A stretch of 16,274 nt of DNA from Paramicrosporidium saccamoebae KSL3 (taxonomy: Eukaryota > Fungi > Cryptomycota): positions 1 through 16,274 of the forward strand of contig MTSL01000082.1 of assembly GCA_002794465.1 (NCBI GenBank), given 5' to 3'. A program made the translations under genes and the position numbers. The stretch's first letter is position 1; the number at the start of each line of letters is the position of its first letter. Below, piece by piece: positions 1 through 15,766 of the stretch. A model generated the notes under the pieces. The model was given only the letters and a program-made list of their open reading frames with translations, had not been told where the DNA came from and did no database searches.

Positions 1-653
1 TCCTTGACATCCAATTCGGCAAGCTTTTTTGCCGCGCTCACCATTTGCACCACATTCATCACCTGCTTGAACGCCCAGATCGGCGCTGAGAACACTGCCA
101 CTGCTAGCCACAACGGCACACTGTAACTAAAGATGTTGAACACGGGACCGTTCTCATATGCCAACATGTACAATGCCACGAAAAACGCCTCATTGGCTGC
201 ACACGCCACAAACATTACCTCCCGTTCCGTGTAATACAGCCTCAGTAGCCAATGGTGTTCCCTTCCCAACTTTTTGTGACTGGTCGCTCCGCCAGCAAGC
301 GTTGCATACATGTGCATATAATGACTGCTGAGGTCCAAACCAAGGAGCGACTGCCACAACAGACCGGTACGCGGATACACGACGCAAAGATGACATAAGA
401 GTCCAGCGGTGGTGGAGCGGTCAGTGACCATATCCAGAACAGCTCCCAAGCGAGAGCATTGACCCAGACGACGGGCAAAGAAGCCGTCGGCAACATCCAA
501 CAGACAGGAGAGAGCATAGAGGGGGAGGAAATGACGAGGTGTCGTGATTAAATAGAATGACAGCAGAGCAAGAATTATCCTCGAGTAGCCGATGAGATTG
601 GGGACAAAGAGATAAATGTCGCGTGTGTTCAGTGGCCTTGGTGGTGATGCCAT
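1..653 (-). CDS. PIS1: CDP-diacylglycerol--inositol 3-phosphatidyltransferase (phosphatidylinositol synthase), 3' end truncated by the window edge
   Basis: Missing from the ORF track because no stop lies in the window. Manual translation from ATG 653: MASPPRPLNTRDIYLFVPNLIGYSRIILALLSF...LLDVADGFFARRLGQCSRLGAVLDMVTDR...LDLSSHYMHMY...LRLYY...ANEAFF...FKQVMNVVQM. Contains the CDP-alcohol phosphatidyltransferase motif DxxDGxxARxxxxxSxxGxxxDxxxD and the PIS-typical VPNLIGYxR N-terminus. Confidence 0.96.
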   Translation of the reverse strand, partial: MASPPRPLNTRDIYLFVPNLIGYSRIILALLSFYLITTPRHFLPLYALSCLLDVADGFFARRLGQCSRLGAVLDMVTDRSTTAGLLCHLCVVYPRTGLLWQSLLGLDLSSHYMHMYATLAGGATSHKKLGREHHWLLRLYYTEREVMFVACAANEAFFVALYMLAYENGPVFNIFSYSVPLWLAVAVFSAPIWAFKQVMNVVQMVSAAKKLAELDVK

Positions 654-708: not shown

Positions 709-2280
709 CTATTTATGCTCATTGCGGTTAGTTTTGTACACGATTGGAGTCTTTGTCTTTTCCGATGAATTGGCAGGCGGATGCGTAACAGTCGACGAGG
801 GCGTAGCATTTGATGGGGGCGTAGAGGTCGGTGTGGACGATGTGGGCACAGTGGGCGTCTGAGTGGTAGTGTACTTTTTTACCTTGGCAGATTCCCCAAG
901 CGTGGCATTAGGAGCGGTCAGGACGGCTGTCGGTTGATAGTCGGACGCAGTCGGACTAAGAGGCTTCTTTGACTTTGGCAAAGCTGTCACAGATCCAGGA
1001 GTGTAGCCAGGCGCAGTTGGACTCAGAGGCTTGTTTGATTTAGGAGGAATAAGAGCTGCTGTTGGCTGGAATTCCTTGGCCACCGGACTAAGCGCAGGTT
1101 TGGGTTTTTGAGATGAATGCTTGTGGTCACCGGACTTTTTGCCCAGTTTCCCTTTTGTTGTGGTCGCCGGCTGCTTCAATTCTCCAAGAGATGCATCCGG
1201 CTTGGGATCGATAAAGAATACAGATGCTTCGTCTGATTCGGTGGGCTTCAATGTCTCAGCATTAGCGGGGCCACGGGACGCCGTCTTGGATTTGGTATCA
1301 TACCGCTTAGGTTCTGATGGCCTTGGTTTGGTATTGGCAGAGGTCTTTTTCCCTGGGTTCGTTTTGCTCGATGCCACAGGATTAGGATCCTTCTTCTTCT
1401 CCGACGGAGTGGTGGCAGACGGGTGTGGATCTGACAGTTTCTCACCGTCCCTCCTCGCCAACGGAGCGTCAGGAGCAGCCGATCCATGGTGGGTTCGGCT
1501 AGCCACATTCCCGGACGTAGATGGGGCATTTGATGGCTCCTCTGTGTTGGAGGTTGCTGGTGCTTTTTTGGTAAGAATTTGAACGGATTGTGGCTTTGTC
1601 TCCTTTGGGGCACGAGCCTTCTTCTTCCTACTCGTCTTTTCCTTTTTAGCGGCCTTGCGTGCCAAGATTGCCTGGTATTCTACAGTCTCCTCCGGCTCCA
1701 CAGTCTGCTTCAAATGATCCAGCAATGGAGTTGGTCTGGCCAACTTTTTGTCATATTTCCATGGATTGAGTTCCTTTTCTTTGGCAAGCATGGTCATTAT
1801 TTGTTCATCGAGGGGAATTGGCAAAGCCGTCTCGGACACTTGCAAGTCGGCCAAGAACTTTTGGAATTCTTCATCTACACATAAACGCCATACATATTTG
1901 CTTACCAGTATCAAGTGTTCCACATAGGGGATCTGTGACGTCGCTCTGCTCCTTTGGTGTGACCTGATACATAGCAAATTCTATCTGTAAAATGTGTTCC
2001 ATGCCACGCTCATCCACAAATGGCGTATCCTTCATCTTTTGTACAAAACTCAGTAGCGTATTAGCATCTTTAAAAGTAACAAATGCTCTGGCTGTACGCG
2101 GCGGCTTGGTTGAAAACCTAAATTCAAGTCGAGCTTGGAAGAGTACATTCCAGGAACCTTTCCTGGATGAAGCGATGCATAACTGATGTATTCCCACCAT
2201 GGCGCTAAGAATTCTGTAAATTGTGCAGAGGTTGTGGCGGGTGGGAGGTTCCTGATTACGAGCTTGCTGCGGAATGACAT
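709..2280 (-). CDS. UPF3: Nonsense-mediated decay factor UPF3 (Smg4/UPF3 RRM plus long low-complexity tail); exons 2280-2147, 2117-1906, 1874-709; about 503 aa
   Basis: Joins three track ORFs through two GT-AG introns. KLVIRNLPP...HPGK...ARAFVTF...DERGMEHILQIEFAMYQVTP...GTLDT-DEEFQKFL...PTPLLDHLK matches the Smg4/UPF3 RRM signature and the downstream conserved blocks. Confidence 0.88.
931..1095 (-). repeat. Three tandem 66-nt (22-aa) repeats in the UPF3 tail, each carrying a PAM2-like motif
   Basis: ALSPVAKEFQP (1095-1063), PLSPTAPGYTP (1029-997) and PLSPTASDYQP (963-931), with an exact 66-nt period. Confidence 0.85.
1875..1905 (-). other. UPF3 intron 2, 31 nt
   Basis: GTAAGC...TTTATGTGTAG. 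Removal gives GTLDT-DEEFQKFL in frame. Confidence 0.88.
2118..2146 (-). other. UPF3 intron 1, 29 nt
   Basis: GTACTC...TTGAATTTAG. Removal joins the KLVIRNLPP frame to the FSTKPPRTARAF frame. Confidence 0.72.
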
Positions 2281-2335: not shown

Positions 2336-3643
2336 ATGACAGGACGTCCCCTTCCAGGTTTCATATACGATCCACAAACCAATAGATATTACCGAGAACA
2401 ACCGGCCTCACGCGTAACAACAGCATACGCTCAGATTGCAGCCAGAACACAGGAACGGACACTTGAGGCGGCCTTTGAGAGTGCCTATCAAAGCGTCTCG
2501 AGAAAGTATGTCTTTGATACCGCCACTTGGTCATTTACTGAATCCTTGAGTCAGAACTGTCGCCTGACAACTCAAAAGTTTCAAGATTTGCTACTGGGAA
2601 GAGTCCTTGGGCCCACAAATCTGCCAGTGGTTGTCCAGGCTGCCGCTGACCTTTATCCATCGACCGTCCCGGGTTCCGGACTCTTAAGGATTAGCGGAGG
2701 GTCTCGGATTAGAGGGGGAGCTTGGGCTAATGAAGGAGCCCGGATAAGCGAAACCAATTCGAGTAATGACAACAATCCGAGTAGTGAAGAGACTCAATTG
2801 TGCTCAGTCTCGTGGGATGGTCCTACTACGCGGGTTTTAGGTCGTCCGCTCCATGGATTTACTTTTGACGGTGTTATGGGCGCCTTTGTGTATCAACATC
2901 CATACGTGTCATTTGTGGCATCGACTGACCTGGGAGATGCAGTATATTTTGCCCATCTCTCTGAAAATCTTGAAGACTGCATCAGGTTCTATGGTATTGG
3001 GTCCCCCACCAATTCAAGATGTAGCCATCTCGCGCTATGTGATTCAGGAGAGGTTCTGGCCATGGTTGGAGAGCAAGACGTTTATTTCGTATCAACTACA
3101 AGTAACAATTGGTCTCCAGTGAAGCTGACCCCAACTGCCTCAAGGAACGAAGAGCTGGCTGCCAAAGCGGTTGGATTCCATTCAAACTCGCCCGACGGTC
3201 TATTGCTCTCCGTGGCAGGAAAGATTATGACCTTTAAGGACGGCCGACGTGCCGCTTCCTTTATTCTCCCCACTGGACGCGCTGCGTCTCAAATGTTCCC
3301 CGATGTGGAGAGGCAGACGCTATATGCCGAGACATTTCATAGTGAATTGTTCATGTTCGATTGGCGTTTTCCGAAAAAGTCCACGTTGGCCATCCAGTTG
3401 CCGGAAAGTCTAAAGTTCCATGGTCCCAAGTATAGCGTCGATTATGACCGTAATGTCATCTATTCGTCCTTTGGGCCGGCTGGAAAACTAGCAGCGTGGG
3501 ATGTGCGAAAGCTTTCCATGCCAATGAGTACTTTTTCCATTGGACGGCCGATTGGACAGCTCTGTCAGTCTCCAGACACGAAAAAGCCCATGGTCGTAAT
3601 TAGACCCTCACCGCCTCCACTACCTTTACCCATATCACAGTAA
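2336..3643 (+). CDS. DCAF4/WDR21-like WD40 protein (putative CUL4-DDB1 substrate receptor), 435 aa
   Basis: N-terminal LPGFIYDPQTNRYY resembles the DCAF4/WDR21 LPGF(Y/F)(Y/F)DPEKKRYF motif. C-terminal WDxR-like boxes (MFDWR, AWDVRK) are present. The WD repeats are divergent. Confidence 0.7.
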   Translation: MTGRPLPGFIYDPQTNRYYREQPASRVTTAYAQIAARTQERTLEAAFESAYQSVSRKYVFDTATWSFTESLSQNCRLTTQKFQDLLLGRVLGPTNLPVVVQAAADLYPSTVPGSGLLRISGGSRIRGGAWANEGARISETNSSNDNNPSSEETQLCSVSWDGPTTRVLGRPLHGFTFDGVMGAFVYQHPYVSFVASTDLGDAVYFAHLSENLEDCIRFYGIGSPTNSRCSHLALCDSGEVLAMVGEQDVYFVSTTSNNWSPVKLTPTASRNEELAAKAVGFHSNSPDGLLLSVAGKIMTFKDGRRAASFILPTGRAASQMFPDVERQTLYAETFHSELFMFDWRFPKKSTLAIQLPESLKFHGPKYSVDYDRNVIYSSFGPAGKLAAWDVRKLSMPMSTFSIGRPIGQLCQSPDTKKPMVVIRPSPPPLPLPISQ

Positions 3644-14125: not shown

Positions 14126-14605
14126 TTAGAGAATCGAAACTAATGCCCCCGCAAGGAGCGATGCACCTTGAACTAACCATCCACCAATGTACGTTCCCCT
14201 TAGACTCAACGAATAGCCCATATCCCACACCAAATGTCGTATCCCATTGAACGTGTGGTAGAAAAAGGGCGTTGCCAGCACAAATTTGCTGCCCGTGACC
14301 AGTGCATCCGGCGTGTTTGCCACGGTTGCCGCAAGACTTTCTGTAATAGCACCCGGCGCCGATATCCCGTAATACAAACCAAAGACGTACATGAGCGTGG
14401 CGAGACCAGCGCCCGTCATGCGATGGCCGATGGACATGAGTGATGTCAGTTGTAGGGCATAGATGGTCAAGTGTGGCGACAATGGACGGCGGGAGCTCTG
14501 CTCCTCCAGCTGCGGGGTCCGCTGTTCATGAACTCTGCGTACACTGCAGGTCCTAGCGACATAACTCTGAGCAAAACCACTCCCAATTCGTCGTAATGCC
14601 AGCAT
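14126..14605 (-). CDS. SDH3: Succinate dehydrogenase cytochrome b560 subunit (complex II), 159 aa
   Basis: Arg-rich mitochondrial presequence. RPLSPHLTIY..QLTSLMSIGHRMTG and FFYHTFNGIRHLVWD are SDHC motifs. Confidence 0.96.
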   Translation of the reverse strand: MLALRRIGSGFAQSYVARTCSVRRVHEQRTPQLEEQSSRRPLSPHLTIYALQLTSLMSIGHRMTGAGLATLMYVFGLYYGISAPGAITESLAATVANTPDALVTGSKFVLATPFFYHTFNGIRHLVWDMGYSLSLRGTYIGGWLVQGASLLAGALVSIL

Positions 14606-14613
14606 TTTGCCTT

Positions 14614-15153
14614 TTATTCTATTTCATTTTCTTTTCTACTTACATCATTGGCGGAGTTTGAGGGGGGTATTCCTGGTGTCGCTTCTGTCGAGGCTTTTAT
14701 TTCTCCTGTTGAGGCTAGTATTTCGCCCGTATCGACAGCTCGGATGGTATAGCCCTTCCCTGCATTGAGCATCGTTTCGTGTGGGGCCGGCAGGATGGGG
14801 GCATCTTTCCCAACTTCCCATTGCGTTGTTACCTGCGTAGGCACTGACATGTCCACAAACACCCGCGAGGACGACATGCGACGCAAGGGTCTTGCTCCTG
14901 GCGCAAATTCGGCCACATCACAGTTGGCTGCTACTATGGGTGTTGGCTTTGGGATGTCTTGGGCAAAGGCAACACGATCTCGGGGCGCAGCTACCGGAGC
15001 ACCGTCGACGCGATGTACTTTTTCTGGCAGGATCCGGTTTGTGGCCGTCATGATCTCGGCCGGGGTGAAGACTGGGTCTAGTTCCCCAGCAGGTGGTAGC
15101 GCAGGGCTTGCGCCACCAAGACTATGGTTTGGGATATTCATATAGCTGGTCAT
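14614..15153 (-). CDS. Hypothetical Pro/Ala-rich protein, about 179 aa from ATG 15153
   Basis: Long uninterrupted ORF filling a gene-sized gap. No family recognised. Contains RVAF and RRMSS motifs. Confidence 0.6.
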   Translation of the reverse strand: MTSYMNIPNHSLGGASPALPPAGELDPVFTPAEIMTATNRILPEKVHRVDGAPVAAPRDRVAFAQDIPKPTPIVAANCDVAEFAPGARPLRRMSSSRVFVDMSVPTQVTTQWEVGKDAPILPAPHETMLNAGKGYTIRAVDTGEILASTGEIKASTEATPGIPPSNSANDVSRKENEIE

Positions 15154-15766
15154 CGGCTCTTTTTTCAGAGACTGTACTTTATTCGCCAGCGAGACAGCAA
15201 CAATCCTCAATTGGTTAGACTTGACCAATCATAGCGCACTGTAAACAAACTGTATTGTTCATTTCCGTGTTCCATCCTAATGATTGTTTGAGAGCGCGGT
15301 ACTGACTCAAGCACTTGATTAAAAAGTACAAAACACAATAATTTGGGCAAGTATACAGCCTACAAAGTCGTCTAGCCAAAGACTACAACTCTGCATTAAA
15401 AATCTGACAGCCAATCAAACACATACTATGTTTAGGTTAGCCAGCTGGCGAATGGGACACAGTATAGCATCAGATTGTGGTAAAGTCCCATACTTAGACA
15501 GACTTCATTTGGAAACTGAATTTAAGTAATAATAAAGCATTTGTGCTGGAAGCTATTTTGGAAAATACTTGTGTTTTTGGGGTGAGTGTCTTATGGGAGG
15601 CACTCTGAAGTGGGACCACTAATCATAGGCGGGTGCTGTTTAATAATCTTTCCTGCTTGTTATTCGCTAAATCGGGAACACTGAACTTTTTAGATACCAT
15701 CTTTTCCTATATAAGCAAATGAAACTATTGCTACTATAAGATCTTGCAGGAGCACATTAATGGTTT

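Follow-up and report, generated by a model that had tools for sequence, protein, structure and literature searches.

A candidate array of three PAM2-like motifs in the predicted disordered tail of UPF3 from Paramicrosporidium saccamoebae

Does the UPF3 protein of Paramicrosporidium saccamoebae KSL3, a rozellomycotan intranuclear parasite of amoebae, carry docking sites for poly(A)-binding protein (PABP) in its tail? UPF3 is a core activator of nonsense-mediated mRNA decay (NMD) and acts at translation termination, where PABP is a known antagonist; PABP near the terminating ribosome is the best-documented NMD antagonist, and how PABP and UPF3 are to be weighed in NMD is still debated, as in the "faux 3′ UTR" (untranslated region) and exon junction complex (EJC) models. 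The question is raised by contig MTSL01000082.1 (assembly GCA_002794465.1), the 16,274 nucleotides (nt) of which were analysed as a whole and are termed the window here, with positions given on the forward strand. A UPF3 gene on the minus strand of the window encodes a long tail in which residues 373-438 form three consecutive units of 22 amino acids (aa) with an exact period (window 1104-907), each resembling the PABP-interacting motif 2 (PAM2). Our preferred reading, held at about even confidence, is that this 66-residue block represents a lineage-specific, selectively maintained PAM2-type short linear motif array; the separate prediction that at least copy 1 would be a functional PABP ligand stands, in our judgement, equally in the balance.

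The units read PKPALSPVAKEFQPTAALIPPK (unit 1, aa 373-394, window 1104-1039), SNKPLSPTAPGYTPGSVTALPK (unit 2, aa 395-416, 1038-973) and SKKPLSPTASDYQPTAVLTAPN (unit 3, aa 417-438, 972-907), all on the minus strand. Each contains a 12-residue core, namely PALSPVAKEFQP in copy 1 (aa 375-386, 1063-1098), which fits xxLxxxAxxFxP, KPLSPTAPGYTP in copy 2 (aa 397-408, 997-1032), with Gly at position 9 and Tyr at position 10, and KPLSPTASDYQP in copy 3 (aa 419-430, 931-966), with Asp at position 9 and Tyr at position 10. The exact 22-aa period described in the first-pass annotation of this DNA was confirmed in the UPF3 open reading frame (ORF), and the range of 931-1095 given there brackets the three cores. 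Pairwise identity among the units is 32-55% at the protein level and 39-61% at the DNA level, and Tandem Repeats Finder detected no DNA-level repeat at the array, so that the repeat exists at the protein level only. Since the units have diverged at the DNA level beyond recognition as a tandem repeat, their duplication must be old; the three copies share one duplication origin and therefore do not count as three independent chance events.

PAM2 has the consensus xxLxxxAxxFxP, in which Phe10 has been described as invariant and essential (PMC6486636), and Glu, Phe and Pro have been named as its essential conserved residues (PMC5118804). Leu and Phe are the two anchors in the crystal structure of a fungal Pab1 MLLE domain with PAM2 (PMC11572963), while in a Leishmania PAM2 Glu and Phe matter and Asn6 is dispensable (PMC6379680). 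All three units fit xxLxxxAxx[FYW]xP, the strict form xxLxxxAxxFxP fitting copy 1 only. An ELM-type LIG_PAM2_1 expression, which allows [FY] at the aromatic position, also fits all three copies; no printed form of it was found in the literature searched. Specifically, copy 1 has all of the defining positions (L3, A7, F10 and P12), and shares K8 and E9 with Paip2 and ataxin-2, and S4-P5 with Tob and PAIP1 (PMC6486636, PMC5118804, PMC7430666); its Val6 should be harmless, since Asn6 is dispensable in the Leishmania motif (PMC6379680). Its earlier description as near-perfect agrees with the presence of every consensus position, and the F-to-Y change ascribed to copies 2 and 3 is indeed found at position 10 of both, which retain L3, S4, P5, A7 and P12. 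The suggestion that the motifs carry SP phospho-sites agrees with the Ser-Pro at motif positions 4-5 and has a precedent in the phospho-regulation of Tob1/Tob2 (PMC7430666). Other motif classes were considered and rejected: a PxLxP motif fits copy 1 only, and both the FxY core of PAM2L and the GW182-type PAM2 are absent from the units. A phmmer search with the block against PDB sequences gave chance matches only (antibody Fab, coatomer), the PAM2 peptides in the PDB being mostly below the 20-residue limit.

The match to PAM2 was set against chance and against other proteins. When the tail was shuffled with its composition preserved, the probability of at least one match was 0.002-0.006, depending on the expression used. 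In 150 other UPF3 homologues (60,384 residues) there was one match to the ELM-type expression and none to the consensus, and the remaining window ORFs of at least 100 aa (about 7.6 thousand aa) contained no PAM2-type match.

Conservation was assessed with an exhaustive phmmer search of 1.84 billion representative proteins, which retrieved 358 UPF3 relatives at E<=1e-3. The top match (P0003) is a 275-aa fragment from a sister species, encoded on a 971-bp contig (L003) of JGI metagenome 3300042204; it is 69% identical to the tail and bears all three motifs (KPVLSPVAKEFQPT, KPLSPIAPGYTPGS and KPLSPIAPDYQPAT). The copy 1 sequence LSPVAKEFQPT is unchanged in this fragment, and the counterparts of the copy 2 and copy 3 cores are KPLSPIAPGYTP and KPLSPIAPDYQP, respectively, such that L3, S4, P5, A7, the aromatic residue at position 10 and P12 are invariant in six out of six motif instances from the two species. 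In a codon comparison covering a 72-residue block in this one species pair, the three 12-residue cores showed amino acid changes at 4 of 36 residues (all at x positions) and 8 synonymous changes, whereas the linkers showed amino acid changes at 16 of 36 residues and again 8 synonymous changes (Fisher p=0.003 for amino acid changes in cores versus linkers). This comparison, though limited to a single species pair, shows purifying selection on the motif pattern.

Outside this pair the motif was not found: the survey of UPF3 orthologues that the first-pass annotation had envisaged covered 150 homologues besides the sister species, none of which carries an xxLxxxAxxFxP consensus motif. A distant orthologue (P0001, from Logan SRR27341044) shares about 50% identity with the UPF3 domain and has a gene order in common with the window, namely an unknown 434-aa gene, UPF3 and phosphatidylinositol synthase. 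As P0001 is without the motif, the latter is not part of core UPF3 function, and since the other homologues lack it too, the array is a lineage-specific addition and not an ancestral UPF3 feature. The statement that no such UPF3 architecture is known also held, none being described in the literature searched. A word-indexed protein search with the whole protein returned only P0001 and P0002 (a Hirsutella homologue, see below), low-complexity words having apparently swamped the search, and gave no matches for the tail block or for the N-terminal domain. In metagenomes, an alignment-based scan found no relatives, and the hits of a pattern scan for KPxLSPxAKEFxP (L004 and L005) were discarded as bacterial chance matches; the collection scanned does not contain the known sister contig, as neither scan recovered it.

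That the host protein is UPF3, as proposed earlier, was confirmed by a match to the Pfam Smg4_UPF3 domain (PF03467, an RNA recognition motif (RRM)-like fold plus a helical region) at aa 4-172 (window 1705-2271, minus strand), scoring 109.3 bits against a cut-off of 24 (E=2.8e-31). Members of the UPF3 family bind the MIF4G-3 domain of UPF2 and act in NMD. In the gene model built here, the gene lies on the minus strand, comprises three exons (2280-2147, 2117-1906 and 1874-709) and encodes a protein of 503 aa. Exon 1 (2147-2280) begins with the ATG at 2280 and reads MSFRSKLVIRNLPP...GKVPGM, its N-terminus agreeing with MSFRSKVVIRNFP... of the syntenic orthologue P0001. Excision of intron 1 (2118-2146; 29 nt, GT..AG) joins GKVPGM to FSTKPPRTARAFVTF in frame, and the orthologue has an intron at the same site, between GKVPHS and FSAKPSRNARAFVSF. 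Exon 2 (1906-2117) is followed by intron 2 (1875-1905; 31 nt, GTAAGC..TAG), the excision of which yields DPLCGTLDTDEEFQKFL (DPLCGTLDT joined to DEEFQKFL), in line with the family-wide DPxxGT[IL]ExDxxYxxFL and with DPLCGTLEEGEGDFQRFL in the orthologue. Both splices are required because the reading frame is otherwise broken. Exon 3 (709-1874, with the stop codon at 709-711) encodes the end of the UPF3 domain and the entire tail in one ORF. The motifs were correctly placed in the same exon as the conserved PTPLL block of UPF3, since a single uninterrupted minus-strand ORF (709-1977) holds both the conserved block ...KKLARPTPLLDHLKQ... (with ...RPTPLLDHL...) and the three units.

The deposited protein, PJF19069.1 (PSACC_01114; UniProt A0A2H9TMX3, "UPF3 domain-containing protein"), is 425 aa long, lacks exon 1 and begins at Met73, an internal ATG at 2035, and its 49-nt intron removes the family-conserved CGTLDTD. 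It is a 5′-truncated model, although with the whole tail, which the deposited annotation likewise assigns to the UPF3 product; the 503-aa model restores the full Smg4_UPF3 domain. Introns of 29 and 31 nt are very short. The position of intron 2 is apparently kept in the sister species, in which gene call P0019 continues across the intron as GTLDTGKQISMAFMGR; intron 2 is absent from the distant orthologue, where intron 1 measures about 93 nt (L002 1738-1831). The main text of the paper by Quandt et al. 2017 (PMC5701793) contains no mention of introns, NMD or polyadenylation, and its five listed supplementary files do not concern these subjects either. A 24-nt GT..AG segment at about 873-896 was considered as a further intron and rejected, because the sister species keeps the segment as protein (AKVKKYTT / AKVIKYTT).

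In an AlphaFold2 model built on 32 sequences, aa 1-100 are predicted with a local distance difference test score (pLDDT) of 90-98 to adopt the RRM-like order beta-alpha-beta-beta-alpha-beta, and aa 101-200 have a pLDDT of 71-93, with predicted helices continuing to aa 199. The tail (aa 200-503, window 712-1623, minus strand) is predicted to be disordered, with a pLDDT of 39-52 and no secondary structure, and this includes the motif region (aa 370-440, pLDDT 41-48, no secondary structure). It is composed of 14% Pro, 13% Thr, 12% Ser and 11% Ala, with 85% disorder-promoting residues and 9 aromatics. PAM2 motifs typically occur in disordered regions (PMC6379680). Overall, the tail strings together short blocks that the sister species has kept, including VQILTKK (1564-1584), VFFID (1207-1221), KRYDTKS.TASRGPAN, VFFID.KPD and AKVKKYTT. 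Eight of the nine tail aromatics are inside conserved blocks, and Y182 precedes the aligned P0003 fragment. Blocks resembling VQILTKK and VFFID recur in distant UPF3s, as in ..KVLKNPER.., ..KIMARPK.. and SKVFFIDRTK of P0040.

Several points weigh against a PAM2-type array. The scan with the Pfam PAM2 hidden Markov model (HMM; PF07145), which the first-pass annotation had named as a check, was negative for every copy, there being no match at E<=10 for the whole protein, an 81-aa block or each copy by itself. The gathering threshold of this model is 20 bits, and control peptides scored 34.6 bits for Paip2, 31 bits for ataxin-2 and 18.6 bits for Tob1 (ALSPNAKEF...). Variants of copy 1 with one residue changed at a non-anchor position scored 18.2 (V6N), 14.6 (S4N) and 17.8 bits (Q11V), and the double variant S4N+V6N reached 21.1 bits; the native copy 1 would accordingly score about 11-12 bits, a value inferred from those of the engineered variants. 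Judged by these scores, copy 1 is a near miss, and not unrelated, to an HMM dominated by LNPNAKEFVP-type sequences. At the position for which Phe is reported to be invariant and essential (PMC6486636), copies 2 and 3 carry Tyr, and no validated Tyr-10 PAM2 was found in the literature searched. In a whole proteome a PAM2-type expression would be expected to match some tens of proteins by chance alone, and the case therefore rests on the quality of copy 1, the identity of the host protein and conservation. The conservation, in turn, rests on one sister sequence, the constraint on the cores does not tell which partner they bind, and P0001, which is syntenic but distant, contains no PAM2-like sequence.

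Some of these points would also fit a conserved motif array that serves a partner other than PABP, the PAM2 likeness of copy 1 being coincidental; we regard this as rather unlikely. The units could be proline-directed phosphosites (P-L-S-P, MAPK-type PxSP) recognized by a phospho-reader, or they could dock another termination or NMD factor. Such an array would fit the observation that KP(x)LSP is the most invariant stretch in all six instances, as well as the departure of copies 2 and 3 from PAM2 at position 10 and positions 8-9 and the negative result with the Pfam HMM. The presence of other conserved blocks in the tail (VQILTKK, KRYDTKS.TASRGPAN, VFFID.KPD and VKKYTT) also favours it and suggests that the tail is a chain of short motifs in general. 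However, a kinase site alone leaves unexplained the fixed spacing of A7, the aromatic residue at position 10 and P12 in all six instances, copy 1 reads exactly AKEF.P, and no other known motif fits all three copies.

It is also conceivable, if improbable, that the block is a functionless and recently duplicated low-complexity segment rich in Pro, Ser and Thr, in which PAM2 was matched by chance and the similarity to the sister species reflects a short divergence. A tail rich in Pro, Thr, Ser and Ala favours such patterns, the distant orthologue is without the motif, and over the entire tail the two species still share 69% identity; yet amino acid changes are far fewer in the cores than in the linkers at equal synonymous counts (4/36 versus 16/36, p=0.003), the units are old, being only 39-61% identical in DNA while keeping the consensus positions, and the shuffle probability is 0.002-0.006. 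We consider it most improbable that the tail lies outside the UPF3 protein, through an unrecognized intron or a separate gene. The deposited model does differ from the present one at the 5′ end, but a single ORF runs without a break from the conserved end of the UPF3 domain (NPWKYDKKLARPTPLLDHL) through the motifs, the tail is present in the deposited 425-aa protein, and the sister species keeps the region as protein as far as the C-terminus common to both, the one GT..AG candidate (AKVKKYTT / AKVIKYTT) included.

The first-pass annotation had further stated that no EJC-binding motif of the RIRNKDRP type is evident in this UPF3, and had proposed that PABP might be used in place of the EJC. The canonical EJC-binding motif is of a metazoan/plant type and is absent in yeast. 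Its pattern, [RK]P....[YFW].P (for example RIRNKDRPSIEIYRPG), has no match in the window protein and occurs at the corresponding place in 49 of 130 homologues, so the statement holds, but only for the canonical RNKDRP....Y.P form. The equivalent position is occupied by KTKTPIVYKTN (aa 488-498, window 727-759, minus strand), a candidate degenerate EJC-binding-type motif that is identical in P0003 and lies in the C-terminus ...SEKTKTPIVYKTNRNEHK. The nearest homologues have [IV][YF][TSK][TSK] near the C-terminus (...ATRVYTS, ...TTVVYTT and ...KVKIYSP), P0001 keeps I-I-Y-S-K at the place of KTKTPIVYKTN, and ...LRPQPIVYKT of P0009 is intermediate between the KTKTPIVYKTN form and the canonical motif. 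A degenerate version of the EJC-binding motif has therefore probably been kept in the tail. The proposal of PABP "in place of" the EJC is weakened by a block that sits at the EJC-motif position and grades into canonical motifs: since such a counterpart is probably kept, "instead of" is unsupported and "in addition to" is equally possible.

Under the preferred reading of the block as PABP docking sites, the array would have arisen by tandem duplication within the Paramicrosporidium lineage and been held by selection in the UPF3 tail. Its receptor would most likely be the MLLE (PABC) domain of the cytoplasmic PABP, with Leu3 and Phe10/Tyr10 filling the two hydrophobic pockets that flank helix 3, in the manner of known PAM2 complexes. 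Copy 1 would be the probable high-affinity site and copies 2 and 3 probably weaker sites that add avidity or rebinding, like the two cooperating PAM2s of Tob2, and the Ser-Pro at positions 4-5 may offer a handle for a proline-directed kinase. An MLLE-bearing PABP is expected in P. saccamoebae because MLLE domains are documented in fungal (PMC11572963) and kinetoplastid (PMC6379680) PABPs; an ataxin-2 homologue has been reported for this species (PMC12898128) but is not decisive on this point. Once bound, UPF3 might be loaded onto polyadenylated messenger ribonucleoproteins, or it might compete with eRF3 and further ligands of MLLE.

When short PAM2 peptides are tethered downstream of a stop codon, PABPC1 is recruited and NMD is suppressed (PMC5118804); a PAM2-bearing UPF3 could therefore be held on poly(A), act as an MLLE competitor or be sequestered, outcomes between which the sequence cannot distinguish. 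The specific scheme in which UPF3 docks on poly(A)-bound PABP through a multivalent, phospho-tunable array (or displaces eRF3), with PABP as the platform from which UPF3 senses the site of termination alongside or instead of the EJC, is in our view unlikely; docking of this kind would place an NMD activator at the 3′ end of every polyadenylated mRNA. The ideas of the first-pass annotation that UPF3 competes with eRF3 or is tethered to the poly(A) tail are purely conjectural, and an effect on NMD is speculative. What the analysis shows is the sequence pattern, its position in a tail predicted to be disordered, the constraint on the cores and the restriction to one lineage; PABP binding, and any consequence for NMD, are inferred.

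Other features of the window and of UPF3 relatives were noted in passing. A 435-aa ORF with no Pfam family (2336-3643, plus strand) is the divergent neighbour of UPF3; it is syntenic with the 434-aa gene in L002 (22% identity) and differs from the deposited model, which has 446 aa. Directly downstream of UPF3 and reaching the contig end is a CDP-alcohol phosphatidyltransferase gene (phosphatidylinositol synthase-like; 3-653, minus strand), an order that is kept in L002. Further away, the deposited model of succinate dehydrogenase cytochrome b (14126-15141, minus strand; 297 aa) fuses a 159-aa Sdh_cyt ORF (14126-14605) with a portion of the 204-aa ORF upstream of it (14614-15228), which has no Pfam match; either the protein has an N-terminal extension of unusual length or the model merges two genes. 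In Hirsutella minnesotensis the UPF3 homologue P0002 (HIM_00308, 631 aa) has a tail that ends in a classical RRM (PF00076), which is another lineage-specific addition to a UPF3 tail.

The motif class is a known one, but the candidate array appears as a regular set of three copies in a host protein where it has been undescribed. If the preferred reading is true, it would provide a direct link between an activator of decay and its main antagonist. Binding, if true, would also make this parasite a natural experiment on the effect of direct contact between UPF3 and PABP, be it to promote, inhibit or relocate surveillance. It would contribute a regular tandem multi-PAM2 array, a rarity in a motif class where almost all known proteins have one copy, and would illustrate the rewiring of a conserved pathway by short linear motifs in a parasite with a reduced genome.

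The protein resembles canonical UPF3/UPF3B in that its Smg4_UPF3 domain is N-terminal, its helical segment is rich in Lys, its tail is disordered by prediction and a motif with Tyr lies near the C-terminus; it differs in that R.RNKDRP....Y.PG of the canonical proteins is replaced by KTKTPIVYKTN and in the PAM2-type consensus motif, which the 150 homologues lack. For the aromatic position of copies 2 and 3 a parallel is the PAM2w of LARP4, in which Trp replaces the "invariant" Phe10 and MLLE binding is retained (PMC6486636), although the residue there is Trp and not Tyr, and LARP4 has a single motif and also binds RNA. Upa2 of Ustilago maydis is likewise a multi-PAM2 protein, with four motifs that bind Pab1, and has been called exceptional, since the number of motifs in almost every PAM2 protein is one (bioRxiv 10.1101/455378). 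In contrast to UPF3 it is a 2121-aa endosomal mRNA-transport scaffold with dispersed motifs, and these are dispensable for the function assayed (10.1101/455378), which calls for caution on functional claims here.

A further comparison is with eRF3 (GSPT1), a termination factor which, like the UPF3 proposed here, has multiple PAM2s and binds the MLLE domain of PABP, an interaction central to models of how PABP antagonizes NMD (PMC5118804, PMC7430666). Its two PAM2s, however, overlap and bind in a mutually exclusive manner, and it promotes normal termination whereas UPF3 promotes NMD. A parallel in architecture is offered by Tob1/Tob2, whose long, disordered C-terminal region contains, as the UPF3 tail would, multiple separate PAM2s; the second PAM2 of Tob, as well as that of PAIP1, has Ser at motif position 4 as do all three UPF3 copies (PMC7430666). 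The Tob1 peptide also fell below the Pfam cut-off. Tob proteins differ from UPF3 in being BTG-domain deadenylation adaptors with two motifs, no regular 22-aa array and Phe10 in all motifs. The PAM2 pair of Tob2 is synergistic, and phosphorylation tunes PABP binding both ways, a phosphomimetic at Ser4 of the second motif strengthening it and JNK-driven phosphorylation of the surrounding disordered region weakening it (PMC7430666).

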